Of a stretch of DNA of 64,000 bases, positions 9,444 to 64,000 are shown piece after piece (within the stretch, counting starts at the first letter, position 1; the number at the start of each line of letters is the position of its first letter). The translations under genes were made by a program, and so were the position numbers. The DNA is from Macrostomum lignano (taxonomy: Eukaryota), in the NCBI GenBank assembly GCA_002269645.1, contig NIVC01002846.1, positions 6,491 through 70,490 of the forward strand, written 5' to 3'. The notes under the pieces are model-generated. The model worked only from the letters and a program-made list of their open reading frames with translations. It was not told the origin of the DNA and did no database searches.

Positions 9444-11844
9444 CCGGCCTGTTGCTTGGCGCTTCAGTTTTTATTGCTCACTTTCTTCAACTTTACAGGT
9501 GCCACCGTGTCGCAGGAGTGACAGCTGTGGCAGGTGCGCTGACATTCCTTTAAGCTCAGTGCTCACATTTGTCTAGTAAGCTTTAGGAAGATTTATCAGA
9601 ATTGTGACCTTCTAAAATGATTCAATGATCGATCGACTGCGTTATTTTTAATCGTGCAAACTTTAATCTCGCTACTTCGAACTCAAGTAGTATGGCTGTC
9701 AAATTTAAATCTAAAACTATTAAAAAACTTCAATTTATCAAATTACTGGTATTCTCCACAGATGCAGTTTTAACTGTCCAGATGTACAAATGTTTTTGAA
9801 GCCATTTCAGAAATTTATATAACTCTGCTTTCTCATTCCTTTGGTGGCTTTCCTGGCTTCTAATTTTGCACAGACCTGCCAAACTGATCAAACCGAATTC
9901 AACCTCCCTAGAGTCCAATTTTAAAGTCCACTTGTATTGCTCTCGGCGTCCCTTTATTTTTTTATTCCTCAGATTTATTTTTTCTCTATTTTAATCTTAA
10001 TTTTGTTGTGCTGTATTACAAATTTATTTTGAGTTTGTCGTTTCAAAGAAACACACTATCTTTTATTGCTATAAGAAATAGCATATTAGTAATTTTAGTG
10101 CACTTTTAAGTGCAAACGCAGATCCAGAAATTCAGAGATTAAAGCAACTGCTTCAGAGCAGGAGCTGCTTAACTCAAATTTCTGGATCCGCGCTGATTCT
10201 ATTGCGTCAAGTGCACAGTATTTTGATTAAAAGTACATATACAGTACTTGTAGTGTGAGATGAAGAATGTGTTATACAGAGCTCCGCTTCGTGTCGCCAT
10301 GAACATGAAGCCATGCGAACCATATTCTATCCATCAACTTTTACATGTGAATGCAAATATAGGTAAATATCAAGCCTACCATTTTTGTAGTAATAGGAGG
10401 CTCAAGCATGACTTAGACAGCTCCTGTTTGGCCACTACGAAAAACTAAACTTTGTTTGATGAATATTTTTTAACTTTCAATTAAGAGTTTAGCAGTAAAC
10501 AGTATCTATAAATATCGATCTGTATGCAGGAATAGAAATCACTGGACTTAGTAAACTAATCCTGAACTTATGCAGTCCCAGTGTAATTTCCCTTTAAAGT
10601 CAGTACATGTAATTTAAAAGTTATGTACATCCTAACTGCCAGGTTTTTTCAATCTTCACGGAATGGCCGATTCTAGCTGATTTCCGAAACGTTTTCTTAC
10701 TGAATTTCACTTGATGAATTTGCGTAAGCACAATTAGCTTCGTTAGCTCCACAACTCCGCGAAATATCGATGTTCTTATGAACCTTGAGTTCCTAATTTT
10801 CTACTTTAATATTCCGCGGTGTAACATGTATTCAGGTCAAAAAGAAAATATAACTCTATACAATAAGCGCCGCATAGAAGAACAGCAATTTGTTATTTTT
10901 CGTTAGTAAACAGTAGTAAACAGCCATTTGTTGGCTGTGACTGCTACCCAGTACAATTCACTTGTCGTACATTGTAAAAATTGTATATCGTACATGTAAA
11001 TTCTAGTACATATAAAAATACACGTACATGTTTATGTACTAAAAATATATCTTCATGCACCGCAATTTAATTTTTTCAATTAAGTGGCAGTCCAACTTTC
11101 TTGCTAACTCGATCACTGTCACCTTTTCTACTACCCACCCCTCCTCCGCCCAGATACAATTGCATAATAATTGTTCTGTTGAAATCTCTACACACCTTAC
11201 TTGTTTTTACTTTACTATGTACCACCCAAGGACCACTATATAGCTCTATATAATTCTATATACAGTGGTCCTTGGTACCACCCCATATACCACCACCACT
11301 TTTGTTGCTTTTGATTTTCACTGCTTGAAAACAAAATACTTATACTGCGTCATGACAAGCCTTACGCCGAAACTTCTGTCGCCAAAATAACTTTTCGCTG
11401 AGATGACTGGATTCCTCTGAGACTGATAAACTCACTTCACCTTTCCTGATTGTTAAAATGAAAAAAATTCATAGAAATGCCTGACTATTTCAAACAGCGA
11501 TTTTTTCTCCACGCTTGCGCGCTGCTCGAATACAAGTTATATTCTTAGGGCCTACTTTAGTTATTAAAACGATTTTGTACCTAATGTGAACTATTTCCAA
11601 TTAATATAATTAGCTTAATTAAATTAAATTGCTAAAATTCTTAAAAATTTCCTAAAAAATTAATAGGTGTCACTTGTCCGGTGACTTTCTTTAAATTAAG
11701 ACTACATCATAATTGATTAGGCTTAATTTAAAAATTGTGCTTCTGTTTCAATTCAATTAGTTTTTATAGCTAGACTAGGCTCTAATTTGATTGGTTTAAC
11801 ATTTAGTGCATCTCTTCCTTGATGTTTTGAACTTGAAAATTGTC

Positions 11845-14800
11845 ATGTCAGGAATTGGTTCCACTTTGCTAAAAAAGATGGGATGGAAAGAAGGTAAGTT
11901 TTGTAAATGAAGTGAGCATTAATGTTATAATTTATTCATTTTTTATTTGGTTTATTTTTACTTCTACCAAATATAGGTCTATTTGGCAAATATCAGGGTT
12001 TTTTTAAATTCATTTTTGGTGATTTGAAAGCAAGAAAACTATAAGGCAAAATCCAAAAACGTGGGATAAAAGTAAAAACGGAAATGGTAAAACAAATCTG
12101 CGGACATTCAATAGAAATTAATATATCTAAAAAAAGGGTTTTTAATAGATAGATAGGTCTTTAAAAAATAGTTCTGGATAAAAACTATTGTTTTCATGCT
12201 TTATATCATTAAATAAATAAGAAAAAACCACAAAAAAGCATTTTAAAAGTCTGAGTTGACCAATTTGCAATTTTTTGTTTCACTTTTTTCATTATTAAAC
12301 AAATAATTTTAAGACTTGTAGGCCTTAAAGAAGGCTAATTTTTTACTACTTATGAAACAAAAAGTAATCTGTGTTTTACTTTTTATTCTATTTAAAAAGA
12401 TGAAGTATTTATAAGGATTTCAAAGTTTTTCTAAAACCACATAAACTCACAAAAATTCATACTAATTTAAAGTGCAAAGTTTGCCAGCAAACATCTTTCT
12501 CTAAAAGTAAATATGAGTATATTGCTGATTGATTCCTTGTTGCAAAATAATCTTTAAGTTGTTTTCTTTCATTTAAATATCAACTTGCATAGTATTAGTA
12601 TTTGTAACATGCCTATATTTAGACTTAAAAATTTTGGGTAAAAAATGGTACCACAAAATGTGAACCATTGTATATGTGTATGCCGAATGTGTATCATTGC
12701 GGCATGTATGCAGGAAAAAAATAATTTTCCAAATTACTTTGGTAGAAGCTGAGTAAAATGCAATTTTCCAATCCTTACGGCAATTTGTATGTTTAAATAA
12801 TAGGCCTAAACTTACATTGAATACAATTTATTGCAAACAAACTCTACAAAATATATGTTGTCAAGAGTAATGAAAGTGATAAATAAATAAACCCTAAAAA
12901 TATTGTTAAATATGTTGTAGAATTATAGTGTAACATTATAAGATAGTTAAAGTTAATAAAATATAATATTATAGCTTTTCTATCATTTTCATTAGAGTCA
13001 TTTTAGGTCATAATTAAACTTACCATTTTAACAAATCATTTTATTAAAAATAAAGCTATACATAAATAATATGTGCTCTTATAGACTTTTTACCTTTTAA
13101 AAACTTAAATAAATTTATTTTATAGCTTTATTGCTTTCAAATTGCCAAAAAACAAATTTTCATAAAACTTGCCCCCAATTTTTGGATTTTGCCATAAAAA
13201 TAAATTTATTTAAGTTTTAAAAAGTTAAAAAACATCTATAAAGGCACCAATTATTCACATATAGTCTTATTTTTAATAAAATGATTTGTTAAAATGGTTA
13301 AATAAATTATGACCTAGGCTAAAATGACTAATAAAAATAATAGAAAAGCTCAAACAATGTATTTATTAACTTTTAAGTATCTCATAATATTACGTTCTAT
13401 TAGGCTACAATATATTTAACATTCTTTTTAAAGGTTTATTTGTTTATCACTTTCGTTACTATTGACAATGTGTATTTTGTAGAGTTTGTTTGCAATAAAT
13501 GCTGTATTTAATGTAAGTTTATTATTTAAGCATACGAATTCCCATAAGGATCAAAAAATTGCATTTTACTCAGCTTCTACTGAAGAAATTTGGAAAATTC
13601 TTTTTTTGCATACATGCTGCAATAATACATATTTAAGTGTAATTTCATTGTTTTTCATCACTTAACAAGCATACAGTAAGTGTCAAAGGCATGATTGCTC
13701 TCACTGAAATTATCCTACCACTGAGTCACCAAAGTTATGCTAGCAGTGTTCCTGTACAACATGAAATCCCACCGGTTAGCCACCAAGTTGTTGAAGGGCT
13801 GATTCTTCTGTCTCTACAAATGATTCTATAGCTGTCACTAAAGTTGTCAAAGGGCTTAACTTCTGTCTTTATAAATGATTCCACAATGCTACCAAGTTGT
13901 ACTAGGGGTTATACTTCTTTCTATTAAATGTCTTAATGTTAGTAGCTGCCACCAAGACTAAATTATGAGTTTATTAATCTTAGAATAAGTCTAAGAAATG
14001 TTTTTTGGAATTAGTCTGAGTATATATCTGAGTAGTTGTCTGAGTATCTATTTGAGAATTTTTCTGAGTATATTGTTCTTAGAATACTATTTAGGCCTTA
14101 CAAGTATTGTTCTCCTGTTATTCTGGCCTGAGCCTGAGCGGTATATTGGCTTACTGGTATATGTATTGCATGTACTTCCAATCCTAGGTATTACCAAGAT
14201 CAGAGGGTCACAGCCTCTGGTTATTCTTTCATGTATCAATTTAGGATCTACTTCATAGTCTCTTACTACTTCCACTTCTTAGTAGTATATACTGTATGTG
14301 TTCTCTGCCACTTCACTTCTCTTCTGCAAATGAATAACTTGAAAAACAATCTTCAATAATGTTTACTTGGAACTCTTACTATTCACTTTAACTGTCTTGC
14401 TATCAAACTGCGATATGCAAGGTTGGTCTCTCCTCTGCCGAAAATGCTTCTATTTATACTAAAATTTACTGCTAGTTTAAACAAAAATTAGTTTGTGTAA
14501 AATATTATTAAAAATATGTGTATTATAACAAATGTGTTTTCCTTTTGGCACGCAAGATTTGGCACGCATTCAAAATGAGTTATACGATTATCAATTTTAT
14601 AAAAGAATCGGGAGGGGCCCTGCACATAAGCATCTGATTTGGAAGCCAGGTAACACATTGGAATTCCTATAAGGATTGGAAAATTGCATTTTACTCAGCT
14701 TCTACTGAAGCATTTTGGAAAATTCTTTTTCCTGCATACACACCGCATCCGCAATAATACATATTTTAGTGTAATTTCATTGTTCTTTGTTGCCTCATAA

Positions 14801-17800
14801 GCCTACAAGAAGCATTTGATTTGGATGCCGGGTTCACATTTTGTGGTACCATTTTTCCCCCAATTTTTAAATCTAAATATAGGTAAATTACATACACTAA
14901 TACTATACAAGTTAATATTTAAATGAAAGAAAACAACTTGAAGATTATTTTGCAACAAAGAATTAGCAGTATATTTACTTTTAGAGAAAGATGCTTGCTA
15001 GCAAACTTTGCACTTTAAATAAGTATGAATCTTTGCAAGTTAAGTGGTTTTAAAGAAACTCAGAAATCCTTTAAAATACTGCAGCTTTTTGAATAAAATA
15101 AAAAGTAAAACACAGATTACTTTCTATTTTGTAAGTAGTAAAATATGAGCCTTCTTAAATGTCTAAAAGTCTTAAAAAAATTGTTTAATTATGAAAAAAG
15201 TGAAACAAAAATGTGAATCAGTCAACTTAGACTTTTAAAATGCTTTTTTTGTGGTTTTTTACTCATTTATTAAATAATGCAAAGCATAAAAACAATAGTT
15301 TTCATCCAGAAATATTTTTAAAGACTTAAAGTCCAAATTGACCATTGTGATTTTTTGTATCCCTAGGCTCATTTCTATCCTCTGAGATGATCTTGCTACT
15401 GTCACCAAAAATGTTGAAAGGCCAAACTTCTCTCTTTAAATCTCAATTGCTACTACCAAAGTAGTGTTCTGCTGTAACTATGGCTATGGCTATGGGATCT
15501 TATGGCAAATATGGTAAAATAAGTGCCTATGGCAACTATGGATATGCCTATAGTAGCAATGTTGGGCACCAGTCCATTAATAAGTATTAATAAGCATTAA
15601 GATTATACATTAAAGTTAATAGACTGCCATTAATGGATTAATAGACTAATGGATTACAAATTTGTGTTAATAATTTTGTAAGTTAATAACAAATTCATTG
15701 TTAATGTTAATGGCAATGTTAATGACCAGAGATGCAAAGAAAGAACAAAAATATAAGTCTAAAAAGAAGTTACAACATTATGAATATGTTTGAATTTACC
15801 TACATGCCTGATTAATCTCTTTAATAATGCATTAAAATTGTGAACTTTATTGCTTGTGTGTAAGCATCAATTGCTTTTATTCACTTCATCACTTTTTAGC
15901 TTTTAAATTGCTTAGATGATCTTTGTGTTTCACTAAAAAGATGGAAAAGCAAAGACAGTACATTGTAAAGTCTGTTTTGTAAAAAAGTGTTAGATTTCTA
16001 TATTTTCTGTGTTAACTTTAATGGATTAATGCTTATTAATAATTATAAATTAACTTTTAGTTACCTTAACAAAATTAAGAGTTAATAAGTTAGGATTTTT
16101 TTGTTTTAATGCTGACACTTGCCATTAATGGAAGTTAAGATTTTCATTAATGGTGCCTAACACTGTATAGTAGATACTGCTCTTATGCTTGACTATGGAA
16201 ATGTGGTAGTTGTTGTCATATTCAGTAGATTTCCATAGCCATAGTTAGTAATTAAAAAATATTAGAAATAGGTAGAATAAAACAAAGATACTTTGGTAAA
16301 CTATATTGGAGACTTATAAACTTATAGATTATACCTAATAAAGTACAATAAAACATTAGCAAACTCTAACTCTTATCAATGTGAAAAAGTTTAGCGTTAG
16401 TACTTTCTGTAGTTATTAAAATTGTTACACTAAAAAAGATAAAATATAATCTTTCAAAGGCAATCAAGTGTTTGTTTTATTTCCATCTTAATTTGCAGTT
16501 GTTTAAGCACAAGGTTATCTTCTCAATTCAAAATAGTTTGTTTCCTAGACTTATTGTTAAAACTATGCAGCTATGGCTATAGGAATTATAAGAATATGGT
16601 AATATTGAGTTCCTTATGGCTACTGAATATAGAGAATTGGAATAAGCCACAGTTTTGCTTATGGCTATAGCTACGACACATAGACCCCCCTTATAGCAGA
16701 ACACTACCAAAGGTTGTTCTACTAGTTCCTAATGTTTATACTTTTATAGATATTGCATGAATATGCATATATGCTTCTGGTAGCATGTATTGTTATGCCT
16801 TTATATGCAGGCTTAACAACAAGTAATTCTTCTGCGGCTGCATACCAACTAGCTGCAGAATTCATTATTTATCTATTGGTAGTGACTATATTTATCTGCT
16901 GGCCCAAGCGGTCCTATGGCATTATCCTATTCCTATATTTATATTTTACTCTTATAAAGGGTTCTTCTATTAGTCCTAGGTATTCTTGGGTTCTTTGACT
17001 TTTTTACTCTGATTCAAATAGAATATTTGGTTGATTTGATATCTCTACCAGAGAGTGGATATGATATTAAACAATAAAAAGAGTAGACATGGTAGAGTAA
17101 GTATAGTAAAGAGAGTATGTATAAATATTATGAAAGTTGTGGCTATCTTGTTCTTATACTAAATATACTATTATCGCCTCAATGATCCTAGTTTTGAGAT
17201 AAGATATCTAGCTGAAGTTTATTTTAGACCTATTGATCCACCCTATAGTAAAGCTACTAATGCACACTAGAAAATGATAATGCCATACTTAAGAAGGTGG
17301 CCTTTGCTGTAAAAAATCGAAATCAATCACCTATGAACTCAAGGGCTCCAGTGGTTTACTAGATATACCCATACAGGAAATTATGTTTTTATAATGATAT
17401 CTATATCCTAGGTTTTTGAGGCCATATAGGCCCCTTGAAAATCTCACTGGAAACTGGATTTTTGGCATCAGAGGCATATCTGACAACTTCATTTTCCCCA
17501 TGCCAGTTGCCAATTTAAAAAAATGATTTTGTAAATATAATAAAAGTGCCATATGAATCAATATGATGGAATTAGTTTTTTTTGGTTGCAGCATATACTG
17601 TATAGCAAATCTTAGAGTTGAGAGAAAAAAATTCTGCTTTTCAAACATAGCCTTGGAAACATCCTCGAGAATTTGGCTAGGCCTAGTTGCCAATGGGCAA
17701 CCAAAAATAGCCATTGGCAACTGGATTTTGAGCCTTAAGGGCCAGCTGGCAACTGGATTTTGAGCCCTAAGGGCCAAATGGCAACTGGATTTCCAACCTT

Positions 17801-18824
17801 AAAAAAACCTAGTCTATATCTATATATTCTGTCTAAAAAACCTCCATATGTTGCTTCAATGACCAACCAATGCCTAATGATAATTATCATCTTAATTACC
17901 TTAGGAACTGCAATTGGCAAGTCTGGAAATGGAATCGTGGAGCCAATTAAGCCAAAACTGAAAATTGGTACTGAAGGTGTAAGTCAACTTTTTATTACTT
18001 CAAATTTAATAGGCTTGTATTCATGAGCTCAATTGTCCCTAACGTTTTTAATGCTTAGCCTGAAATAATGATGAGTTTGAGTTTCTCTGATCAAAAAACT
18101 GAAAGATTACTGCTTGAAATGGCTTGACTTGAGCACAAAGTGCCCTAGCTAAGCTTGGCGCTCAACTTGGGACTTGCCAAATTCCCCTGCCTGGCTCAGT
18201 GTGCAGTGCACTTCATGACCCTAAAAAATTAATAATGCAGCTACAATGCGTCACCCCCAAAATCACCTGAAGATGGGCTTCAAAGAGTCTGAGCGCCTCT
18301 GCTCGGGCTGGTGGATGGACGCCTTCAACCGAGCGGCCGGCGCCTCCGCCTCGCCCGCAACAGCCACTGCCGCACAGGCAACCGCGGCGCCCGTTCTGGG
18401 CCGGCCCTACGGCACGGCCTTCTCCGCGGCCAGCGCCGTCCTTTGCGACGGCCGCGAGCAGCCGTCGGGTGCAGCCCCGTCGCCGGCAGAGCTCCCGGTG
18501 CCAGCTCATCTGCCGCGGACACCGTCGGACGCGGATCTGCTGGCGGCCTGCGGCGGTCGCACGGCTCACTGCGCCGCCAGATTCGGCTTGAGTCTGTCGG
18601 GCAAACTCGCCCGGGTTCGAGCTCAGGACCTCCAGACAGGCGGCAGCGACTCGACGACCGAATCAGCGGGAGCAGCTGTCGAATCAACGAAAAAGAGTAA
18701 AAAGGCGAAAAAGCGAAGGCGCGAGAAAGAGGCGGAACTGGAGACCCCCAGCGGCTCAGTTGTCAAAGCGGTTAAGATGAAGCGGAAACGAACTCGAACT
18801 CCTGACAGAGAAGAAGCTGAGTGA
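11845..18824 (+). CDS. GPATCH4: G-patch domain-containing protein 4-like, 3 exons with a 6-kb first intron
   Basis: Exons 11845-11893, 17905-17978 and 18273-18824. Spliced N-terminus MSGIGSTLLKKMGWKEG|TAIGKSGNGIVEPIKPKLKIGTEG|MGFKESERLCSGWWMDAFNRAA is a G-patch followed by GxG-x10-WW-xx-FN as in GPATCH4. The C-terminus is Lys-rich. Confidence 0.85.
12157..15326. mobile_element. Composite foldback/MITE-like structure: outer ~500-bp inverted repeats and an inner ~430-bp hairpin
   Basis: 12157-12666 is the reverse complement of 14831-15326 (aaaaatggtaccacaaaatgtgaacc / ggttcacattttgtggtaccattttt). 12700-13125 is the reverse complement of 13194-13625. 14665-14790 is a direct copy of 13540-13650. 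Confidence 0.8.
15557..16165. mobile_element. Decayed MITE with short TIRs and TTAAT/GTTAA-rich subterminal repeats
   Basis: The left end caatgttgggcacc...cattaat matches the reverse complement of the right end attaatggtgcctaacactg. Confidence 0.55.
17408..17812. mobile_element. MITE-like element with TIR CTAGGTTTTT and internal GGCAACTGGATTTT repeats
   Basis: Ends ctaggttttt and aaaaacctag. Three ~30-bp direct repeats lie at 17712-17795, with inverted copies near 17490 and 17685. Confidence 0.5.
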
Positions 18825-19322
18825 CATGACTTGCGTGTAGACTGTAGAGTTTCATAATTCATACCATACGACCATACATGTGGGTTGGCTGCTGTCAGTC
18901 TTAATAAACCGTTACGCTTCCAGTGTATTGCAAGTGACAGGTTAATTAAAAATGAGAACTCAGAAATCGGAAAGATTGTCATTTAATTATCAAGTCAAGA
19001 GGAACGTCTGGGCGAATGTCTTTATTTGGCAATTTGTAAGCAAGGAACGCGGTTTAAGAGTTAAGGCATGGATTGTGCAAGTGCATTTTACAAGGTGGCA
19101 GGGGAAATTCGGTTGTCTTAGTTCAGCAGTTCAGCTACAGTTTGGGTTTATCACAAACCTGGACGGAAAGGTAATTGTAAAATTTTCACAGCAACACTGA
19201 GACCGGCCCGCCCATTGGAGTGGGAAGAGAGCAGGGTAGTCTCAATTTTGCACCTGAAGTGACGTCATGAAAAATATCTCATTAGCTCAATCGTCAATTC
19301 TATAGCCATACTCGTCTGCAGT

Positions 19323-21535
19323 CTAGCTGTACATGTGAGTCTGCATCATGACCTTGACGAACTCTTCAACATCGACTGCATTGTCGCCGTTTGTGTCGGC
19401 TTCCTGGATCATCTCCTCCAGCTCAGAGTCCGGTATGCGCACTTTGTAGTCACGGCAGAGCTTCTTCAGGTTGGCCAGGGTCACCTTGCCGGTGCCATCT
19501 GCGTTCGGGATGAGGGAGAGGAGGATTTGGACTCGTGATTTTGACTAGCTTGATAAGACGTTTTCAGGTTTGAGCATTAAATCCCACCTTCTGAACTTCT
19601 GAATATAAAATGCAGCATGTGTGTTGTCCAAGGTTTAATTCAAATGTTCTCAGGCTAACGATCGGGTTTCAAGACCATTTCAACTGTCCTTATCTCTTCA
19701 ATGCGTCTCAAGGGTTTCTGGGCTGAATTTTGTCCAGCGCCCCAGATTGTGCAAAGAAGCAAATCTTGAGAAAATCAGTTTACAGAAGTCGATAACTTCT
19801 ACATGTAGCTTTATCTTGCCGGTGCATTTTGCAACGATAACCGGCCTTCCTGCAGAGAAATTTGCATGATAACGCAACAACCTTTGTTGTTTCAATTCTT
19901 ACCCAAGTCGAAGTGCTTGAATCCCAGCACGATCTCGTCGTGCAGGTCCCTCACGTCGCCTTGTCGGTCGATGACAAAGTTTAGAAATGCGTTGAAGTCA
20001 GTGGCGCTGGAATGAATTGTTGGGATGGCCCGAATGGACATTATTAACTGCCTTGGGAACTCTGCTGGTTCGTTCCACCAAACCAAACCACTCGTCCTTT
20101 CTGTGTGCATTCAGTATCTGCACTATACATCAACCTCAATGCACCCAACACCCAAACTCACACAAGCCCTTTGTTAAGCTCGGTCGCCATCTTGTGCACC
20201 TGGTCCATGTCGGTCTTGAAGCCCAGAGCTCGCAGGGCCAGACGGACTTCGGCCAGACTCAGATTGCTGCATGGAATGAGCAGGCATTTTTGCAAGCCTA
20301 TAGCTTCTAACTAGCATGAGCTTAAAATAACTCCGGGCCTCACCCGTCTAGATCTGAGTCGAACACGTCAAACACGAGCTTGAGGTCGCGAATCTCCTGC
20401 GGCGTGAGCTCATCCAGGGCCCGTACCCCAATTTTCATGTTGTGCAGCTCTTTCTCCTCGACTTCGTGCGTTTTTAACACGTGCAGAAGCTATGGGATGT
20501 GGCGTTTTGCATTGTCATTGTCACATGCATTTGCTTTTTTTACAAACTAAAACTGTGCCTTTGCATAAAACCTGTGTGCGTACTGATTAAAGTGCCGCGG
20601 AGCTACATGTACATGTATATGTGGGGGTCACGCTCACCCCGCAACAACTGCGCCGCCACCATTGAAATTGCGCTCTAAAAACTAAATGAGAAGTATAGCC
20701 AAAGCTCGACAAATTACAGGCGCTGAACAGTTGTCACTTGTTTGACATCGCATCGACCCACCTACAGACAGGGGCACCCACCAAGAGACAGGTGCAGTGG
20801 TCCCTACGCCACTGTCTGAGGCTTCGGAGTCAACTAAAGTGCGTAATATGCGATTTTAGGAGATTTTTTGTCTTGGGATCTGTAAATTGGGGCGGGAGTG
20901 TGCTTTTGAGGTTCATTTAATTTGCACTGCCATCAACTGAAGCCTATTTTGGTGATCACACTCAGGGAAACGACAAAACTTGGAGGCCGATCTATTAATA
21001 ACTTAGTTCTCGAAAAGCATTACCTCGATATGCTCTACCTTGTAGTCAGTGATGTCTGTGGTAAAAACCAATTAATAGGCCTCCAAGTTTGTCGTTTCCT
21101 GTCCCGAGTATTGAGTAGTCCCTGATCACACTGTACATGATTTTTTGTCACCTTTTATACCAGTCACGTGATTTTATTGCAATGTTTTGTAAAGAAGGAT
21201 CAGTAAGGATGTTGCAGTAGTGAGTGAAAAACAAGGGTGAAATTGTTAAAAAATTGGAACCCCATGCTTCTGCAGTGTTCTTTAAATGGTATTTTCAAAG
21301 GTGCTATCAAAAGGCAAAATTTATTTCATAGTTTAGGACAGTGGCTACTTACATTTTCTCCCAGCAGTGGTATGTTTGGTGGCAGTGGCTTGGGCATCAG
21401 GACACTGCCAGAATCTTGTGCACCTCCATCAGCTTTGGGCAGATCAGAACGCCCAGCAATGCTTGCCTTGTTGCCCAACTTCTTGCTGCCTTTCTTGCCA
21501 CCCTTTTTACCACCTTTCTTGCCACCTTTTGGCAT
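19323..21535 (-). CDS. Centrin/caltractin-like EF-hand protein with a GGKK-repeat N-terminus, 5 exons
   Basis: Exons 21535-21353, 20489-20344, 20266-20162, 20006-19903 and 19498-19323, with phases 0/2/2/1 all consistent. EF1 DSDLDGNLSLAE, then ALRALGF; EF3 DLDGTGKVTLAN ends in N as in centrins; EF4 DTNGDNAVDVEE. Confidence 0.85.
20963..21101. mobile_element. ~140-bp MITE with ~30-bp TIRs in centrin-like intron 1
   Basis: cagggaaacgacaaaacttggaggccgatctattaat is nearly the reverse complement of attaataggcctccaagtttgtcgtttcctg. Its CpGs are retained. Confidence 0.75.
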
Positions 21536-29430: not shown

Positions 29431-29814
29431 GGACACTAATGGATTTCGCAGACATTTAATATAATAAAACTACTACATGAACTACTCGCAGTAGGAATAA
29501 CAGCGCTTGTGCGCTGAGCGGGAATTAAAAAGTGAATTATGATGGTACAGCTATGTTGCGGAAACAGATATGTACAGCTGGGATATAAGGGCATGGCCAA
29601 TAAACTGGCGCCCTTGTTGTTCACAAGATTGCTGCAGAAAATGAAAAAGCCAAATGGGAAAAAACTTGAAATGTGCGCGAATTTTCGGAATACACGAGTG
29701 TTGCTAAATAAAGAGGCTTGGCTCACCAGGTGAAGCAAGCTTAAACAAGGTGGTATAAAGTTAGTGGCAGTGTAAAAAGGCAACGTAAAACTGGCTTTTG
29801 TAGGCTTAACAAAC

Positions 29815-30650: not shown

Positions 30651-30924
30651 ACAAAAGCAGTCCATAAAATAGCAGTGACACAAATACTGATAAATGTAAC
30701 AATCAAAATTGAAAATTTCCAGATTCCAAATAAGCAAACGAAAAAAGTGGAACAAGCCAGTTTGACCAGAAAAGTTGACAATGAAGGTTTTCATTTTTTC
30801 AACAGATACAGAACACTGCTCGCAAAGATTAAAGGATATAAAAATTTGTTAGTAAGTCAACTACCCCTACTTTGTCCAGGCATATTGAGCTGGCAGTTTA
30901 GCAAAACCTGCTCAGTGAATGAGC

Positions 30925-54070: not shown

Positions 54071-54600
54071 GCCAAACATTTAACCTCTTGGTGGAAACCA
54101 TCTTCAGGCTGTCAATCTTGCTTGATGAAGCTTGAAACTGCATGGCCCCATGGTGAGGAATAAATTCGGCAACAGAAATGAGAAAGTGGCTGTCCAGACT
54201 AGCAGCGGGTTAAATGTTATGCAGCATTCGATAAGCGCCAGTGCCAATCAGAAGAACTGGCCGCCGAAAATAAACACAAAAATTTATTTCAAATCTGCAC
54301 AGGAAATCATTAAAATTAACAATTAAAGCAAAGGCGTTGCTGCTCTACTACAAGTAGCAGTACGAGTAAATTAGTGCCAAATTATCAAATGAATTTTTAG
54401 CATCGAATTGAAATGGCAAATACTGGCTTCACCTATATAGCTAGCACACTGTAGACTCAGTAGAGAATAATTTATGTCAATTACTGAGTCAATTACTGAT
54501 TTAGACTCTAGATGGTTTTAACTGGATAGTCTCGGGGGTCTAACGATTCCAATTAGATGAACTGGTGTCTCAATTCACATCAATTCACAAATAGGTTCAT

Positions 54601-54906
54601 TAAGGTCTCAATTAGGTCTATGATGACAAAGGTCTCAGGTCAATCAAGGTCACCATTAGGTCAAATGACAAGGTCACAGGTCAATCAAGGTCACCATTAG
54701 GTCAATGATGACAAAGGTCTCAGGTCAATCAAGGTCACCATTAGGTCAATGATGACAAAGGTCTCAGGTCAATCAATTACCATTAGGTCAATGATGACAA
54801 AGGTCTCAGGTCAATCAAGGTCACCATTAGGTCAATGATGACAAAGGTCTCAGGTCAATCAATTACCATTAGGTCAATGATGACAAGGTCACAGGTCAAT
54901 CAAGGT
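54601..54906. repeat. 44-bp minisatellite made of AGGTCA motifs, immediately downstream of the PHYH stop
   Basis: Unit CAGGTCAATCAAGGTCACCATTAGGTCAATGATGACAAAGGTCT, about 6 copies. Confidence 0.9.
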
Positions 54907-54929
54907 CGCGCCGCTGAAGTCATCGAAGG

Positions 54930-57756
54930 TCACAGCTTGGCCTCCCGGCCGCGCACGTGGCGAGCCCGCAGCCGCCAGACGTCCTCGTAGGACAGCTTGG
55001 CGTCGGGGCCAAGACGCTGGCGGACGATTTCGTCAACCTCATCGGCGATCTTCTGCTGATGGGTGCCAGTGACGTCGATGTATTCCACGTGCGCGGAGGC
55101 GTAGTGGCAGGAGATGGCCTTACGGTAGCCCTCAGTCCGGTTCGCGCCGCTGCCGTGGATCAGCAGGGGGTGGAACAGCACCGTGTCGCCGGCGGACATC
55201 TCCAGGTAGGTCAGGGGCAGGGAGCCCGGGTCCAGGTCCACGATGCCGTGGAAGGCTTTGTTCACCTTGCCCTGTGGATTAGGGATTATCGATGAGAACT
55301 AGCCTGATTAGAGTTTGGATTTGGGGAGGTGAATTAAGATTTGGATTAGTGGTGTCTGTAAATTTTGATTTGGATTAGCCGTGTTTATAAGACCGGGATT
55401 TGGATTAGCCGTGTTTATAAGACTGGGATTTGGATTAGCGGTGTTTTTTAAGAATGGGATTTGGATTAGGAGAACGAGTGTTTAAATGAGAACTTGGAGC
55501 ATGAAAATTTAGATTGGAGAAGAACAAAATAATCCCAGAAAAGCTTTTCAGAATCCCCAAACCTCACCCCCCAATTTGGATAATCGTGCGGCAGCAGCCG
55601 GCCGTCCAGGTGCGAACCGGGCACGGCCACCAGGCAGCCGTTGGCCCGCGTGACCGGCTCCAAGGCGGTCCAGGCGCAAACCACCCTGTCCGCCGGGCGG
55701 AACGGGAAATAGTACAGGTCCTGGTGCAGCGGGTGCCTGCTGCTCAGGGTGCCGCGGTCGGGCGGCTTGCTGATCAGCATTGTGTGCATCGCCGCGACGT
55801 CCGGCCCGATGATGTCCACGACGTAGTCCAGCACCTGGCGGGAGCGGATATGGATTCTTCAGGAGGCGGATATGGATTCTTCAGGGTGCGGAAACGGATT
55901 CTTCAGGGAGCAGATATGGATTCTTCAGGGAACAGATATGGATTCTTCAGGGAGCAGATATGGGTTCTTCAGGGAGCAGATATGGATTCTTCAGGGGGCA
56001 GATATAAATTCTTCAGGGAGCAGATATGAATTATTCAGGGAGCAGATATGAATTATTCAGGGAGCAGATATGAATTCTTCAGGGAGCAGATATGAATTCT
56101 TCAGGGAGCAGATATGAATTCTTCAGGGAGCAGATATGAATTCTTCAGGGGGGATATGGATTCTTCAGGGAGAGGATTTGAGTTCCCCAGGGGACAGCTA
56201 ACAATCGCACCTGCGGCAGCTGGCAGTAGGCAAAAAGCCGATCGTCATTCTGGAAGTCCTGCAGCTTGTACACCGCCCGCTCACCGCCGCCGCTGTCGTC
56301 CAAGGCGCTGACGTCGCGCATCACCGTCAGGCCTGGCGGGCGCTGGGCGCCGGCGCAGATTTCCTGGAAACGGGCGCTGCCGACCGGCGGAAAAAATAAA
56401 TTGTGAAGATTTCATAAAAGCAGCTCAGATAAGAAATAACATGTAGCGTTACAGTCCATAGTATCTGGGGCACCAAGATGAGTATCGGGGGTGCCAAGAT
56501 GAGTATCAGGGGCAACAAGATGAGCATTGGGGTGTCAAGATGAGTATCGGGGGGGGGGGCAAGATGAGTATCGGGGGGGCAAGATGAGTATCAGGGGCAA
56601 CAAAATGAGCATTGGGGAGAGGCGCCAAGATGAGCATCGGGGGTGCCAAGATGAGTATCGGGGGAGAGGGGGGGGCAAGATGAGCATCAGGAGGGGGTGA
56701 CAAGATGAGTGTGTCGGGGGGGGCAAGATGAGCATCAGGAGGCGCCAAGATGAGTATCAGGAGGGGGGGGGCAAGATGAGCATCGGGAGGCGCCAAGATG
56801 AGTATCAGGAGGGGGGGGCAAGATGAGCATCAGGAGGCGCCAAGATGAGTATCAGGAGGGGGGGCAAGATAAGCATCGGGAGGCGCCAAGATGAGTATCA
56901 GGAGGGGGGGGCAAGATGAGCATCGGGAGGCGCCAAGATGAGTATCAGGAGGGGGGGCAAGATGAGCATCAGGAGGCGCCAAGATGAGTATCAGGAGGGG
57001 GGGCAAGATAAGCATCGGGAGGCGCCAAGATGAGTATCAGGAGGGGGGCAAGATGAGCATCGGGAGGCGCCAAGATGAGTATCGGGGGGGGGCAAGATGA
57101 GCATCGGGAGGCGCCAAGATGAGTATCAGGAGGGGGGGGCAAGATGAGCATCGGGAGGCGCCAAGATGAGTATCAGGAGGGGGGGGGGCAAGATGAGCAT
57201 CGGGAGGCGCCAAGATGAGTATCAGGAGGGGGGGGGCAAGATGAGCATCAGGAGGCGCCAAGATGAGTATCAGGAGGGGGGGGGCAAGATGAGCATCGGG
57301 GGTGCCGAGATGAGTATCTGGGGGGGGCCCAAGATGAGCATCGGGGGGAGGCGCCAAGGTGAGCATAAGGGACACCAAACATGTAGTGAAGGTAGCCAAG
57401 ATAGTTGCTAGATAAAGAAAAGATTTAACGCAGACGCCAAAATACAAGCTGGTTGTCTGAGCCTTTAAAAAGCTTGCATATTTTTAAAAGTGCAGACAAA
57501 ACCCAGGGGTTATTAAAATCGGCAGTTAGATCTGCAGCAAGGGCAGATTGATAAGGAGGATATCAGCTGACTTGGAAGCCAAGGCAAAGAAGGCAAAGTC
57601 AGGTTGCACGCACATGTAATCTCGCACGCAGTGCTCGGGCACCAGGCCTTTCACCACAATAAAGCCGTTCTTTTCGTAGAACAGCCGGTCAGATGGGCTG
57701 AGCTGCCCGCCGCCGACAGAGTATCTGAGTGGCGTCTCTGCCATGCCTGCTGGCAT
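54930..57756 (-). CDS. PHYH: Phytanoyl-CoA dioxygenase (peroxisomal 2OG-Fe(II) oxygenase), 4 exons
   Basis: Exons 57756-57614, 56376-56211, 55834-55568 and 55271-54930, phases consistent. Motifs [51 protein letters not shown] and [15 protein letters not shown]. The protein ends in AKL. Confidence 0.93.
55315..55470. repeat. ~30-bp repeat (GATTTGGATTAGCCGTGTTTATAAGACCGG) x3-4 in PHYH intron 3
   Basis: Direct reading. Confidence 0.75.
55840..56175. repeat. 22-bp minisatellite (GGAGCAGATATGGATTCTTCAG)n filling PHYH intron 2
   Basis: Direct reading; the array abuts the splice acceptor. Confidence 0.92.
56465..57365. repeat. Dimeric G-run minisatellite (CAAGATGAGTATCAGGAGn / CAAGATGAGCATCGGGAGGCGC) in PHYH intron 1
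   Basis: Direct reading; G-runs of 5-10 nt. Confidence 0.92.
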
Positions 57757-57824
57757 GCATTCAATGCGATGGAGCCGCTCTCTGATTTATAAACTTAACA
57801 CATCTCAGGGAAAGGTTGCTGGGA

Positions 57825-58675
57825 GATGGAGACAGGGAGTCTGAGAGGAGGGAGAGGGGGAAGGGGATTTGGGCAAAAGGGCGAAGGGAGAAAGGAGAGC
57901 CAGGGAGAGAATGATGGACAGAGAGGAGTAGGGGAGAGAGAGAGAGGGGAACGAGAGGAGATGGACAAACGCTGAGAGGAAGATGGGGAGAGGGAGTTGG
58001 GAGAGGGAGAGGGGAGAGGGAGATGGGGAGAGGGAGATGAGGGAGAGGGAGATGAGGGAGAGGGAGATGAGGGAGAGGGAGAGGGGGAGAGGGAGATGGG
58101 GAGAGGGAGATGGGGGAGAGGGAGATGGGGAGAGCGATTAGGGAGATAGGGATAATAGAGGGAGATGAGGGACAGGGAGATGGGGAGAGGGAGATGAGGC
58201 AGAGGGACATGGGGAGAGGGAGATGAGGGAGAGGGAGATGGGGAGAGCGATTAGGGAGATAGGGATAATAGAGGGAGATGAGGGACAGGGAGATGGGGAG
58301 AGAGAGATGAGGCAGAGGGACATGGGGAGAGGGAGATGAGGGAGAGGGAGATGGGAGAGGGAGAGGGGGAGAGGGAGATGGGGAGAGGGAGATGGGGGAG
58401 AGGGAGATGGGGAGAGGGAGATGGGAGAGGGAGAGGGGGAGAGGGAGATGGGGAGAGCGATTAGGGAGATAGGGATAATAGAGGGAGATGAGGGAGAGGG
58501 AGATGGGGAGAGGGAGATGGGAGAGGGAGGGGGGAGGGAGATGGGGAGAGGGAGATGGGAGAGGGAGATGGGAGAGGGAGATGGGGAGAGCGATTAGGGA
58601 GATAGGGATAATAGAGGGAGATGAGGGACAGGGAGATAGGGAGAAGGGAGAGGGACATAGGAGAGGGAAAGTCTG
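57825..58675. repeat. Polypurine (GA-rich) tract built of GGGAGAGGGAGAT units
   Basis: The + strand is almost entirely G/A, with a recurring cgattagggagatagggataatag subunit. Confidence 0.92.
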
Positions 58676-58984
58676 ATAGGAAAGATAAGGAGAGGAAGTG
58701 CAGGATGAAAAGTATATTTCAGCCCAATTTTACTCAATAAAATATAAATGCTGCCAGACAAGGTGAAAAATGCACAGAGGCTCGCAAATAATTTCCAGAG
58801 CCTGGGCTTGGCTGCACTTTTTTATTTATTAATAAAATTTTGCTAAAATTGCACCAGCAGAGCAAACTTTGCCAGAAATGTCATAACAGGCTTAAACAAT
58901 ATCATAATTGCAATTTATTTTCATACCGGAAAAGGACTCTACGAAAAGTGAGATTTTAGGCTTAGGTTGGAGGACTTTACAATT

Positions 58985-59700
58985 CAGGAATTCCATGGAT
59001 AATGAGGGGAATTCCATGGATAATGAGGGGAATTCCATGGATAATGAGGGAAATTCCATGGATAATGAGGGAAATTCCATGGATAATGAGGGGAATTCCA
59101 GGGATAACGAGGGAAATTCCTTGGATATTGAGGTGAATTCCATGGATATTGAGGGGAATTCCATGGATATTGAGGGGAATTCCATGGATATTGAGGGGAA
59201 TTCCATGGATATTGAGGGGAATTCCATGGATATTGAGGGGAATTCCATGGATATTGAGGGGAATTCCATGGATATTGAGGGGAATTCCATGGATATTGAG
59301 GGGAATTCCTTGGATATTGAGGGGAATTCCATGGATATTGAGGGGAATTCCATGGATATTGAGGGGAATTCCATGGATATTGAGGGGAATTCCATGGATA
59401 TTGAGGGGAATTCCATGAATATTGAGGGGAATTCCATGGATATTGAGGGGGAATTCCATGAATAATGAGAGAAATTCCATGGATATTGAGGGAATTCCAT
59501 GGATATTGAGGGGAATTCCATGGATATTGAGGGGAATTCCATGGATATTGAGGGGAATTCCATGGATATTGAGGGGAATTCCATGGATAATGAGATAATA
59601 GATAACAAGGGGAATTCCATGAATGAGTAGAATTCCATGGATATTCAAGGGAATTTCGTGGATGAGGGACATTCCATGGATAATGAAGTGAATTCCACTG
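58985..59700. repeat. 21-bp minisatellite (GGAATTCCATGGATATTGAGG)n directly after the METTL18 stop
   Basis: Direct reading; it explains the MEFPSIS and EGNSMDI ORFs. Confidence 0.95.
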
Positions 59701-59730
59701 ATAATGAGAATGCGATGGAATCAGAACCGG

Positions 59731-61139
59731 TCACCGCCGCCGCCGCAGCTCAAGAATCACTCGGGCCAGAGCCGCCGACTCCGTGCGCATGGCGGTCGAG
59801 TGGCTGAACTGGCCGCGACGGTCGAGGAAGTCGCAAAACAAAGACTCGGAGCCGCCGACGCCGAAGTAGCTGACCTTGGCGGCAACCAGAGCGACACCGT
59901 CCGGGGCCAGCAGATGGCTTAGCGCGTCGTGGAGCTGCTGGTAATAGTCGGATTGTAAATAGTCTCAGCTGTCAGCACCAGATCGAAGGCGCCGCGCGCC
60001 GCCTCCCAAGCCGCCAGGCCGGCCCAGCTACCGGCCAGGAACTCCAGCTGCGGCGGCCGCGCCAGATCGGCGAGGTTTAACCGGCAGTTCGGCATCGTCC
60101 AGGCTCGGAGCACTTCCGGGTTGAAGTCCTGAGAAGAGAATGAAGTGACAAGGGATAAAAGTGCAAATTTTGTGAACCACTGTGAAACGTCACGGACACC
60201 TCACCTGAAAGGCCACCTTCACTGGCCGGTGCCTTCTCAGGCAGCTCAGCCCAGGCAGTCCAGCTCCGCAGCCCAGCTCCATCACTCGGAGACCCGGCTG
60301 CAGCTCCGCCTTGTCCAGCAGCCATGTGGCCAAGTCTTCCGAGCACTCCCACAGCTGCAAGCCGCCTTCGTACACGCCGCTTACCTAGCAGTTAGGGAGA
60401 TGCTTTTAATTGGTGTCACTCAGTGAGGTTGCTTACCTAGCAGTTAGGGAGATGCTTTTAATTGGTGTCACTCAGTGAGGTTGCACACAAACAGACTCTC
60501 AGTGAGATTGCACACAAACAGACTCTCAGTGAGATTGCATACATTTAAACAGACTCTCAGTGAGATTGCATACATCCAAAAAGACTCTCAGTGAGATTGC
60601 ACAAATTAAAAAAACTCTCAGTGAGATTGCACACATTAAAAAACTCTCAGTGAGATTGCACACATTAAAAAACTCTCAGTGAGATAATTATTCATAATTT
60701 CAAAACTTGCAAAGCTTGCAACTTGTAACTTTAGGGGTAAACTGTGGCCTAATTTCTTTCCATTTTCCTCAGTAGCAAATAAAAAAGCAATACCAAAATA
60801 CAGACTAACCAAGTCTGTGCTTTGCTCAGAGTCTACAGGCATCAGGTCATTCGCCTTGGCCCATAGGCTGACCTCCTCAGGACAATAGTAGCTGACAGAT
60901 GCATTGGGGTCAGTTGATCCCTTTAGCAGCTGCACTGAGGTCACAAACATCATCCTCACAGACTGGCAGTTCATCTAGCTCTAGGCTGAGCTCCTTCAAT
61001 TGACCTGATGACTTATCTGATATTAGACCTATAGATTTGCTTTTGTTAGCCTGATTTTCACAGCTAGTTGAAATGCCAAACTGTCAATATCATTGCCAAT
61101 ATCCTTAGGGTCAATTTGGAAGTTGAATGAGAAGGCCAT
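59731..61139 (-). CDS. METTL18: Histidine protein methyltransferase 1 homolog, with apparent indels
   Basis: The start reads MAFSFNF at 61139. Exon segments are 61139-60810 (...QSTDL), 60384-60205 (VSGVYEGGLQLWECS...RVMELGCGAGLPG) and 60128-59731 (DFNPEV...FDLVLTAETIYNP-[+1]-DYYQQLHDAL...AAKVSYFGVGG). There is a 1-nt deletion near 59950. The 5' segment needs either two compensating indels or a short intron. Confidence 0.85.
60375..60685. repeat. ~54-bp tandem duplication of the METTL18 splice acceptor region, followed by a ~27-30-bp repeat (ACTCTCAGTGAGATTGCA core)
   Basis: gcttacctagcagttagggagatgcttttaattggtgtcactcagtgaggtt occurs twice, followed by about 7 units of the shorter repeat. Confidence 0.85.
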
Positions 61140-61588
61140 TTTTCCTCTGAAATTTTTATACAATTTAAATTTTAAAAAATTATTTTATTATATTTGGCTT
61201 GCATTTTGGTCTATAAAATTATCAATTTAATTTACAAAATAGCTATTTATTAGAAACTAGGCTTAATTACTCTAGTCTAAACTTTTCTAAATTTAAACTA
61301 TATACTTACAAGTTATATTGGCCAAACTAAAACTAAAAGTAAGAATATTGTCAAATAAAACCTAGGGCCTAACACTTGGAAATAGTTATTTATTAGAAAG
61401 TCTATTTATTTCATTGTTCTATGGTAAAAGTACACATATAATTATGTTTTTAACATTAATATTATAATATATATATATATATATATAAGTAAACATATTT
61501 TACAAATATTGATTTTGATAATTTCTAAAGAGTTTGACTAGGGCCTACTTTCTCTAGTATAGCTCTCTTTGATATATTGATAACCTAG

Positions 61589-62180
61589 AATTCTGGTTGT
61601 TTTGCCCCAAACTATTTTGGCCATAGACAGTTCACCCCAGACCATTTTGACCATAAACCAGTTTGGCTATAGGCATTTTGGCCAAAATGGTAATTATGTA
61701 ATTTAGAGATATAGCCATCTTTACATCTTTATTTTCTTTTTTCAATACTAATTTTTAGTTTTAATATATAATAAAATATGATCTAAATTGTTGCTGTAAC
61801 AATTGTGCTATTGTAATTTTTTATTTACAAATTTTATTTACAAAAAAATTGTAAATTATTATAAGTATTTTTAAAAAGTCATTCCTTTTGAAAGTGTGAT
61901 AACTAAAGCCAATTTTAAACAATCTGAGGATGAGAAAGGTTTTGTTTACAAGCAAGGTAAAGCTAGAAATACTAAAAGAATAAAATTTGTCACCAAAATT
62001 AAGAATTAAAGCACAAAGTTTAAAATCATAAAGTTTAAAAATGGTCCATGGCTGAAACTGTCTATGGGTGAAATGGTCTGTGGACAAAACAGTCTGTGGG
62101 CAAAATGGTCTGTTGGCAAAATGGTCTGGGAGCAAAATGTCCATGGCCAAAATGGTTTATGGGCAAAATGACCAGTTACC
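61589..62180. mobile_element. CpG-decayed MITE with inverted subterminal repeats (GGCAAAATGGTC..)
   Basis: The left end ctggttgttttgccc (61593-61607) matches the reverse complement of the right end gggcaaaatgaccag (62161-62175). Arrays of ~15-bp units run in opposite orientations at the two ends. Confidence 0.65.
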
Positions 62181-64000
62181 ATTTGTCATAAGTATAAATC
62201 TTAAAATTTTGCCTTCTAGCTAGCTCAGACTATTTTTAATTATAAAGATAGGCTATGGTCCATAGCCATATACTTATGACTGTGTTGTGCATGATTTTTT
62301 AAGGTGTAGCTTGTTAAGCGACAAAAAACTTAAATTAAAAAATAAGTTTTTAAAAATGTATATATTTGCTAGGCCTATTTATATTAGATGTATTATTAAA
62401 AAAGATCTAGAATCTTATTGAAAAGGCTTAGATATAATTGGATCTAGAACAGAAGCTAAACATGAATGGTGAACCTACTTTATTAAGTTTGTAATTTGGA
62501 ACCTAAAAGTAAATACTATAGGCCTACCAAGTATACCAAGTCGCAAGTGGTAAAGTTCAATATACATTTCTAAGATCGGTCAATAAGCTTAGTATAATAG
62601 CTCACTAATTTCTAGCCTACAAACTTTGAAATTGTGCACTTTGCAATAGCAGATTTGTAGCGTTTCTTTTATTTTACTAAATCTCAAATTTCTAATCATT
62701 TCACATGTAATCATTTCAAGTATTCCACATATATTTCAAGTGAGAAATTTTATTTTTTAAATCGCTCTTTTCTTTAGCCCAAATTACTACATGATCTGAA
62801 AAGCTCCATGATAAGACATTAGGACTTGCGTTAGCTAATTAAGTTTTGTTGACTTGAAGCTTTCGAGCTTGATCCCTTGCTGCCCAGGACGTTACGTCCA
62901 TGCCCATGCACGCAAAAGTTTTAAATTAAACAACATTAAAATCTTGGATTGAATACGATGCACGCGCTCGGTGGCACATAAGTCTATTAAATATTTAGTA
63001 AGAAATACTTTATATTTCTTTAATATTATATTTTCTGAAATGTAAATCGCACAGAGTATTTTCAGTAAATTATATCACTGGCACTTTGGTATACTGCATT
63101 ATTGTTTCGTTATTCAATCGTCGCGTCCCGTCGATAGATGGCAGTCAAAGAATGAGAGACCAATTTGAAAAAAAATGCACACTAACTATAGTTACGGTAA
63201 GAAAGAAGATAATGACTTATTTTTATATCAACAGGATAAGAGAGATCGAGAGATCAAGGAAGGAAGAAACAGGAATTAGAAGAAGCCGAAACAGAGGTTT
63301 TGCACAACTACTTCATGGTTGCTTCATGCGCAAAGCCCTATAATTTACGGCGTAATCAACAGTGCGAATTGGATGTACACGTTACAGGCTAGGTAGAAGA
63401 AGGATATATGTACGAGCGTATGGACCCAGAGAGATGAGCAGTGCAGGGTTTGTCTTAGATTGGTTCTTTGACAGGGTTGGAAAGAGCCTACATACACAAG
63501 TACAAGTACTTTCGACATCTAAGAGCGAAATCGACTGAAAAAATATTACCTAGGCCCATGGGTTTGCTATAACGTAATAAATGCAGACTGAAAACCAACT
63601 CTCTTTCCAAATCAACAGCTGCAGATTCCCGCAGATTGCAAAGTCAAGGCAGCATATTAGTAACGACTGGAACTAAACGGTGCTATAGCCTAAACCAAAT
63701 CAGAGAAAGCAGATTCTGCGCTCCGTTTCTTCTTTTCTTTTACAATATTCTCAAAATCTTGCAAGTTCCTTTTGAGGTGGGGGTAGCCTTCACAACAGTA
63801 CATTAGCCGCTGTTTGGGGGGACACATGCAGGGCCAGCTGATCCGATAAATTGAAGTCTAGCCCAAAACACTAAACATAGCCCGTTGCTAGGTTGGGGTC
63901 CGCTCTGCCCTCACAGAATTGGGGATTTTAATGCATTTGTTGAATTTGACGCCCTCTCCTTTCCTAGGCCGCTGCGATCCCCAAGCTAGTACACTTTTTT

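Follow-up and report, generated by a model that had tools for sequence, protein, structure and literature searches.

The region described here is a 64-kb stretch of the Macrostomum lignano genome (assembly Mlig_3_7, contig NIVC01002846.1:6491-70490), which will be called the window and in whose coordinates positions are given unless another locus is named. It carries a GPATCH4-like gene, a centrin-like EF-hand gene, LASP, METTL18, ferroportin, an esterase gene, two Amt genes and PHYH. These names, proposed in a first-pass annotation of the same DNA, were borne out by Pfam matches (G-patch; EF-hand; LIM, nebulin and SH3; FPN1; Abhydrolase_3; Ammonium_transp; PhyH) and, for METTL18, by similarity to homologues (see below), but the two open reading frames (ORFs) designated nkd and SLC15-like had no Pfam match and both identities are unconfirmed. 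The ferroportin ORF was 100% identical to an M. lignano protein, a single-exon ORF (24223-25704) is annotated on NIVC01002846.1, and the locus retrieved with it matched window 14223-35707 without a difference, which fixes the coordinates of the window on this contig. In four places the window contains a sharply bounded domain that is nearly devoid of CpG dinucleotides, and a start codon lies inside each of the four: that of GPATCH4 in domain A, of the centrin-like gene in domain B, of LASP in domain C and of METTL18 in domain D (Table 1).

CpG frequency was followed as the observed/expected ratio (o/e) in 1-kb sliding windows, and the sequence was segmented with a two-state hidden Markov model (HMM) in which the emission was C followed by G (C to CpG), scaled by local G content. 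The whole window has a GC content of 0.45 and a CpG o/e of 0.76. In the sliding windows CpG o/e dropped to 0-0.3 over long stretches, whereas GpC o/e in the same stretches was 1.2-1.9. The CpG-normal segments of the HMM had o/e values of 0.9-1.0 (approximately 0.93 outside the blocks), and four CpG-poor blocks that are not tandem arrays were found, with CpG o/e between 0.04 and 0.21 and GpC o/e between 1.4 and 1.6. These domains occupy 15 of the 64 kb. Both procedures recovered the four AT-rich, almost CpG-free domains that the first-pass annotation had pointed out, with slightly shifted edges. The edges are abrupt: CpGs that are tens of bp apart on one side give way, within a few tens of bp, to CpGs 400-1900 bp apart on the other. 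Six further low-CpG segments of the HMM correspond to tandem arrays built of CpG-free units (Table 1); a tandem-repeat artefact, which holds for these six stretches, was ruled out for the four domains.

The AT-rich, CpG-normal non-coding flanks at 9480-11684 (upstream of GPATCH4), 22537-24150, 39594-42050 and 62542-63994 served as control. When pooled, they had a GC content of 0.37 and a CpG odds ratio of 0.93, the level against which the Poisson probabilities of the domains were calculated (Table 1), and this value confirms that the DNA further upstream of each domain is CpG-normal. The strand-symmetrised CpG odds ratio was 0.13 in the domains, as against 0.93 in this neighbouring AT-rich DNA. 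Mean GC content was 0.31 in the domains, which are the most AT-rich DNA of the window (GC approximately 0.30). CpG alone was depleted, seven-fold: the GpC odds ratio was 1.56 in the domains and 1.35 in the flanks, that of TpG/CpA was 1.22 and 1.12, and the remaining dinucleotides barely differed, CC/GG being undepleted as well. In the sliding windows flanking DNA with a GC content of 0.32-0.40 kept the normal CpG level. Because GpC is intact and the AT-rich flanks are CpG-normal, the depletion is not an effect of base composition, and a GC-content artefact, a possibility raised in the first-pass annotation, was ruled out by the comparison of CpG with GpC in the sliding windows.

All four domains stop before the CpG-rich 3' exons of their genes, and in GPATCH4 and METTL18 the edge coincides with the acceptor of the following exon. 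According to our exon models the coding DNA located inside the domains amounts to 804 nt and contains 5 CpG instead of the expected 41 (o/e 0.12, GC 0.46), whereas the later exons of the same four genes contain 213 CpG in 2195 nt (o/e 1.02, GC 0.62). The marked difference between 5' and later coding segments was therefore upheld, but the figures of about 705 nt and 3 CpG given for the former had to be corrected. Exons of the genes without a domain had CpG o/e values of 0.89-1.18. The HMM detected no non-tandem low-CpG block overlapping any other gene of the window, in agreement with the earlier claim that the nkd, ferroportin, SLC15-like, esterase, Amt and PHYH genes lack such a domain.

Domain A begins 160 nt upstream of the GPATCH4 ATG and extends through the first two exons and both introns, the first of which is 6 kb long, as far as the last-exon acceptor. 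The three-exon model encodes 224 amino acids, which is the length of the annotated product, and when spliced it matched the Pfam G-patch domain with E=4e-11. Two copies of an old inverted repeat, 78% identical, are located in the domain (12154-12785 and 14662-15328).

Domains B and D are arranged differently. Domain B covers 965 nt upstream of the ATG of the centrin-like gene, exon 1 and the first approximately 230 nt of intron 1; the gene is annotated as a 232-aa EF-hand product. Domain D reaches from 1398 nt before the METTL18 ATG through the 5' part of the coding sequence and a 421-nt intron, and its downstream edge coincides with the exon-3 acceptor. Thus, the claim that the domains span the first exons and the first intron was correct as far as start codons and first exons are concerned, but not for domains B and D as a whole, which lie mostly upstream of the ATG, nor for most of the centrin-like intron 1. 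METTL18 was identified by tblastn with 91 homologues, whose N-terminal motif is matched by the predicted protein; in the homologue search no Macrostomum protein was found, and the top match was 41-45% identical.

Strong 3' splice sites precede the start codons in three of the genes. In the centrin-like gene the site (TGTTTCAG, 21543-21536) and in METTL18 a TTTCAG acceptor (AATTTCAG, 61147-61140) are 8 nt upstream of the ATG, and in LASP the site (TTATTTTCAG, around 39407) is 48 nt upstream of it. Spliced leader (SL) trans-splicing is known in M. lignano, and judged from their sequence these putative sites fit either SL trans-splice acceptors or introns in the 5' untranslated region. TA and GC strand skews showed no sign that the parts of the domains before the ATG are transcribed.

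In the window METTL18 lacks an intact reading frame. The last exon shows an apparent -1 frameshift (59940-59959, between TAETIYN and DYYQQL), and the 5' coding segment is interrupted by an in-frame TAG (61026-61040, minus strand). This can be due either to indels of the assembly or to a decaying copy in a duplicated genome. A perfect 52-nt tandem duplication (60379-60484) comprises the exon-3 acceptor and the first bases of the exon, yielding two identical candidate 3' splice sites; it adjoins an array of 29-31-nt units that fills the METTL18 intron.

Domain C, whose upstream edge is approximately 230 nt before the LASP ATG, takes in the first two exons and the 4.7-kb intron that separates them. 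It contains a 46-mer array (36143-36994), inverted repeats resembling miniature inverted-repeat transposable elements (MITEs), and an island of CpG-normal DNA in intron 1 (Table 1). TTGGCRTRCA matches the window seven times, always at 38085-38661 and on the plus strand, whereas 0.9 matches would be expected in the whole 64 kb. This cluster could represent binding sites of a factor that keeps the island unmethylated, or could be part of a repeat element. The introns in the 3' part of LASP (30928-34365), outside the domain, are filled by tandem repeats.

An old paralogue of LASP is present on another contig (locus L002), of which only exons 2 and 3 can be aligned at the DNA level (76% identity). 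This locus has a fifth domain with a start codon, depleted of CpG over 7101-12659 and 17120-18203. It takes in the first two exons and the intron between them, and in both LASP and its paralogue the downstream edge of the depletion is at the same exon, exon 2. The conservation of this edge in two old paralogues argues for a cue provided by gene structure or chromatin rather than for chance. The depleted block of the paralogue starts right at the ATG of cortactin, a gene in divergent orientation (5725-7146, minus strand) whose single-exon body is CpG-normal; one depleted block may serve the 5' ends of two genes there. A transcript in Logan (SRR28338165), which is 85-91% identical to the paralogue and probably comes from a related Macrostomum, has a CpG-free exon 1, and its o/e is 0.49 in exons 1-2 and 1.14 in the rest. 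It provides a first hint that 5' erosion may be common to more than one species.

Table 1. CpG-depleted domains, exons of the four associated genes and other features of the window
Feature	Position	Strand	Properties
Domain A	11685-18289	+	6605 nt; 31 CpG; o/e 0.21; GpC o/e 1.56; Poisson P=2e-28
Domain B	21120-22500	-	5 CpG; o/e 0.16; Poisson P=9e-8
Domain C	34468-39588	-	27 CpG; o/e 0.07 in 34468-37817 and 0.05 in 38660-39588; Poisson P=8e-28
Domain D	60380-62537	-	2 CpG; o/e 0.04; Poisson P=3e-19
GPATCH4 exon 1	11845-11893	+	ATG and start of G-patch; peptide MSGIGSTLLKKMGWKE; GTAAGT donor; 0 CpG; inside domain A
GPATCH4 exon 2	17905-17978	+	G-patch core; flanked by AG and GT; 1 CpG; inside domain A
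GPATCH4 last exon	18273-18824	+	CpG-rich; 68 CpG, o/e 1.14 and GC 0.66 in 18283-18824
Centrin-like (EF-hand) exon 1	21353-21535	-	GTAAGT donor; 1 CpG, 11.7 expected; inside domain B
Centrin-like exons 2-5 with introns	19335-20408	-	CpG-normal; exon o/e 0.70-1.46; EF-hand Pfam matches
LASP exon 1	39291-39359	-	first half of LIM domain; 23-residue peptide; 0 CpG; inside domain C
LASP exon 2	34461-34556	-	second half of LIM domain; 2 CpG, both at the 3' end; downstream edge of domain C
LASP exons 3-6	30928-34365	-	nebulin repeats, Q-rich exon and SH3 (Pfam Nebulin and SH3); exon o/e 0.65-1.25; outside the domain
CpG-normal island	37821-38656		in LASP intron 1, inside domain C; 836 nt; 19 CpG; o/e 0.74
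METTL18 5' coding part	60806-61139	-	ATG at 61139, donor at 60806; conserved MAFSFNF start; 1 CpG, 16.6 expected; inside domain D
METTL18 3' exons	59734-60384	-	methyltransferase fold; 76-nt intron 60129-60204; 61 CpG; o/e 0.94
CpG-less tandem arrays	3309-3792, 4124-5048, 29704-30928, 32939-33624, 54549-54901, 58629-59646		low-CpG HMM segments overlapping tandem repeats
Minisatellite examples	1836-2390, 3325-5041, 29815-30650, 31123-34037, 52449-53923, 56473-59708		

The left part of the window has a second copy in the assembly (NIVC01000709.1), which is approximately 96.5% identical, with 1.5-3.4% substitutions per aligned block. Inside domain A (1698 aligned nt, divergence 2.7%) six of the nine CpG sites differed between the copies by an exchange of CpG and TpG/CpA, as opposed to transitions at 27 of 599 CpG sites outside the domain (10.2 kb, divergence 2.25%; Fisher p=1.2e-6). 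The corresponding value was 5 of 88 for the AT-rich flank 9169-11684 (p=3.4e-5; 56 mismatches in 2507 nt, approximately 2.2%), and 9 of 133 for the Amt tandem duplicates, a CpG-normal control with 2.4% divergence. At similar overall divergence, CpG transitions were approximately 15-fold more frequent inside domain A. A CpG-specific excess of transitions of this kind is what is expected from the deamination of 5-methylcytosine (5mC).

Transposable elements (TEs) were found in the window and in the two related loci. The first intron of the LASP paralogue harbours an intact 4.4-kb long terminal repeat (LTR) retrotransposon (12670-17118 of L002) with a 1257-aa gag-pol ORF encoding protease, reverse transcriptase, RNase H and integrase. 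It is CpG-normal (o/e 0.78) within the depleted intron, and since it splits a 66-mer array (flanks 12201-12635 and 17149-17527), it was inserted later than the array arose. In the NIVC01000709.1 copy GPATCH4 intron 1 contains a 5.8-kb hAT element (15830-21669 of that locus) with a 533-aa ORF including the hAT dimerisation domain; it is only partly depleted, its o/e ranging from 0.4 to 1.3, and it has no counterpart in the window (compare 12666-12800). Conversely, a 1.6-kb segment of the same intron (13055-14669) is missing from the second copy. Comparison of the domains with the hAT and LTR elements of the related loci revealed no TE-protein or TE-DNA similarity, and in domains B and D neither a dispersed repeat nor similarity to TE proteins was found among the loci compared. 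The recent TEs may have escaped depletion because they are too young for decay or because they are protected.

Elsewhere in the window, the two Amt genes (42537-45624 and 49218-50777) form a tandem pair with exons 96-98% identical, in CpG-normal DNA. Between them lies a mariner-like remnant, also in CpG-normal DNA, with a helix-turn-helix ORF (48332-48832) and 126-nt terminal inverted repeats (TIRs; 48105-48230 and 48714-48839) that are 95% complementary. Minisatellites with units of 12-46 nt are very dense across the window and occupy many introns and intergenic spaces (Table 1). They extend into coding DNA at the N-terminus of ferroportin (6969-7340) and in the Q-rich exon of LASP (32337-32693).

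We consider it likely that the domains are the mutational footprint of long-standing germline CpG methylation by DNMT1/DNMT3, and this methylation is probably still active in the blocks. M. lignano is reported to have kept DNMT1 and DNMT3, in contrast to planarians and parasitic flatworms, and to show low-level 5mC in bisulfite sequencing (PMC11292947, PMC10658182; retention of the enzymes and presence of 5mC are also reported in PMC9246332). In the proposed mechanism DNMT1 and DNMT3 would methylate CpG sites of the germline or neoblast lineage in discrete blocks. The blocks would begin at or near the 5' ends of genes, 160-230 nt (GPATCH4, LASP) or approximately 1-1.4 kb (centrin-like gene, METTL18) upstream of the ATG, the far-upstream part in the latter two being perhaps a trans-spliced outron; they would run through the first exon(s) and the long first intron, and stop short of the exons further 3'. 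Spontaneous deamination of 5mC would convert CpG to TpG/CpA, in the course of which approximately 85-95% of the CpGs and part of the G+C would be lost from exons and introns alike, while unmethylated neighbouring DNA would retain the expected CpG frequency. That 5mC was the agent, that it acted in the germline or in neoblasts and that the upstream edge corresponds to the transcription start site (TSS) is what we infer. The earlier suggestion that blocks downstream of the TSS are methylated agrees with the CpG-specific loss, with the coverage of start codons and with the hypermutability of domain A; it applies less well to domains B and D, which may be promoter or outron DNA. The candidate system proposed there is not new; its features are those of the known DNMT-based mosaic methylation of invertebrates with a 5' bias.

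Several points weigh against this interpretation. The excess of TpG/CpA in the domains is modest (1.22 versus 1.12), and we estimate that the loss of CpG explains only about half of the drop in GC content; the remainder may reflect the long-term equilibrium or a second regional bias. The evidence for hypermutability comes from nine CpG sites in 1.7 kb of domain A only. The probability that four random domains of equal sizes would each cover a start codon in this window is 0.057, and the link between domains and 5' gene ends within one window is therefore suggestive. PHYH, which is plausibly broadly expressed, has no domain. Moreover, domains B and D lie upstream of the ATG for approximately two thirds of their length, and there the term 'gene body' can be applied only tentatively.

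The last point leads to the alternative that the blocks are centred on promoters, outrons or first introns, reflecting TSS-proximal methylation that includes the promoter or a mark of trans-spliced outrons or first introns. TSS-proximal methylation including the promoter is a pattern reported for a centipede and a mealybug. The long upstream parts of domains B and D, the strong 3' splice sites 8 nt before the ATG in both genes and the block of the LASP paralogue that starts at the cortactin start codon, with the cortactin body CpG-normal, are in line with this. However, the GPATCH4 and LASP blocks extend no more than 160-230 nt upstream of the ATG, 95% of their length being downstream of it, and the strand skews gave no transcription signal for the upstream parts. 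We regard this alternative as unlikely. The view that methylation is not involved at all, and that the domains were shaped by another regional process such as AT-biased mutation, missing GC-biased gene conversion or counter-selection of CpG in 5' exons and long introns, could refer to their being the most AT-rich DNA of the window (GC 0.30) and to the fact that CpG loss covers only about half of the GC difference. It is very improbable: CpG was reduced seven-fold but GpC and CC/GG were not, flanks of GC 0.32-0.40 are CpG-normal, CpG transitions were approximately 15-fold commoner inside the block at equal overall divergence, and the species possesses the DNMT1/3 toolkit.

Methylation could also be aimed at TEs and repeats in long first introns and spread from there to exons, the connection with 5' ends being a by-product. 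This possibility, already named as the alternative in the first-pass annotation, draws on the old inverted repeats of domain A (78% identical), on the structural polymorphism of that intron for the hAT element, and on the MITE-like inverted repeats and the 46-mer array of domain C. But the recognisable recent TEs are the least depleted parts of the blocks (LTR retrotransposon o/e 0.78; hAT 0.4-1.3), the mariner-like element with its 95% TIRs is in CpG-normal DNA at 48.1-48.8 kb, comparison of the loci revealed neither dispersed repeats nor similarity to TE proteins in domains B and D, and tandem arrays filling introns in the 3' parts of LASP and PHYH do not belong to such domains unless their unit is CpG-less. 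Since the erosion is seen in unique introns and exons, and recent TEs are CpG-normal or only partly depleted, TE-directed spreading is disfavoured, and we hold it to be very unlikely. C-to-T mutagenesis resembling repeat-induced point mutation, or otherwise directed at TEs, was rejected, as unique exons and introns are depleted, CpG is the only dinucleotide affected and recognisable TEs are the least depleted.

Germline CpG methylation, as proposed here, can be compared with known methylation systems. Mosaic methylation consists of DNMT1/DNMT3-dependent domains over constitutively expressed transcription units with low CpG o/e. The M. lignano domains are similar to those of Ciona, oyster, annelids and sea anemone in the sharp-edged alternation of CpG-depleted and CpG-normal DNA with exons and introns affected alike, in the gene types, the marked genes being presumably of housekeeping and the unmarked ones (transporters, esterase, Amt) of tissue type, in that TEs are not the primary target, and in the presence of DNMT1 and DNMT3 in the species. 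They differ in ending well before the 3' end, the 3' exons being CpG-normal, and in that two of the genes have most of the domain upstream of the ATG. In its canonical form gene-body methylation extends over the body and leaves the TSS free. In Hymenoptera gene-body methylation is 5'-biased, and the insect signal is mainly exonic and sparse, with introns largely spared. M. lignano shares with insects a signal concentrated towards the 5' end of transcription units (exon o/e 0.12 versus 1.02 downstream), the low global methylation and the marking of a subset of conserved, presumably housekeeping genes. In contrast, erosion in its 4.7-6-kb introns is as complete as in the exons (o/e 0.04-0.2), and as Platyhelminthes are unrelated to insects, the likeness can be at most convergent. 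A preprint (bioRxiv 10.1101/2025.01.09.632173) describes a methylation drop at the TSS and cites a 2020 study in which methylation in Nicrophorus was biased to the first three exons. The approximately 10-15-fold hypermutability of CpG and the CpG-rich patch in depleted DNA (37821-38656) recall the global methylation of vertebrates, but the default state in M. lignano appears to be unmethylated (window o/e 0.76, approximately 0.93 outside the blocks), and 15 of 64 kb are depleted.

Flatworms are usually cited as a phylum without canonical DNA methylation, to which M. lignano is an exception. The DNMT1/3 agent and the occurrence of 5mC in this species are already published. A block-like 5' layout was not found described for a free-living flatworm in a literature search that excluded the primary bisulfite paper (Wasik 2015). 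In M. lignano methylation seems to be concentrated in kb-scale, sharp-edged 5' blocks of particular genes rather than present as diffuse low-level noise, and the erosion is strong and lasting enough to strip nearly all CpGs and to shift codon usage within a gene. The species is experimentally workable (transgenesis, RNA interference, neoblasts), and the domains are concrete loci with defined edges at which the setting of boundaries and the role of methylation at the 5' ends of genes can be studied. Segmentation by CpG o/e can map the methylated compartment genome-wide in M. lignano and its relatives.

It is possible, although doubtful, that the targeting rule in M. lignano is non-canonical, with TSS-proximal blocks, made up of promoter-proximal or outron DNA, the first exon and the long first intron, in a conserved set of genes, a downstream edge that has long been fixed at a given exon, as in LASP and its paralogue, and an entirely unmethylated 3' body. 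If true, such a TSS-proximal rule would differ from gene-body methylation of the type linked to trimethylation of histone H3 lysine 36 (H3K36me3), and it might be tied to the outrons of SL trans-splicing or to the control of first introns and cryptic initiation. It would then represent a flatworm-specific solution in a phylum that was thought to have largely lost 5mC.

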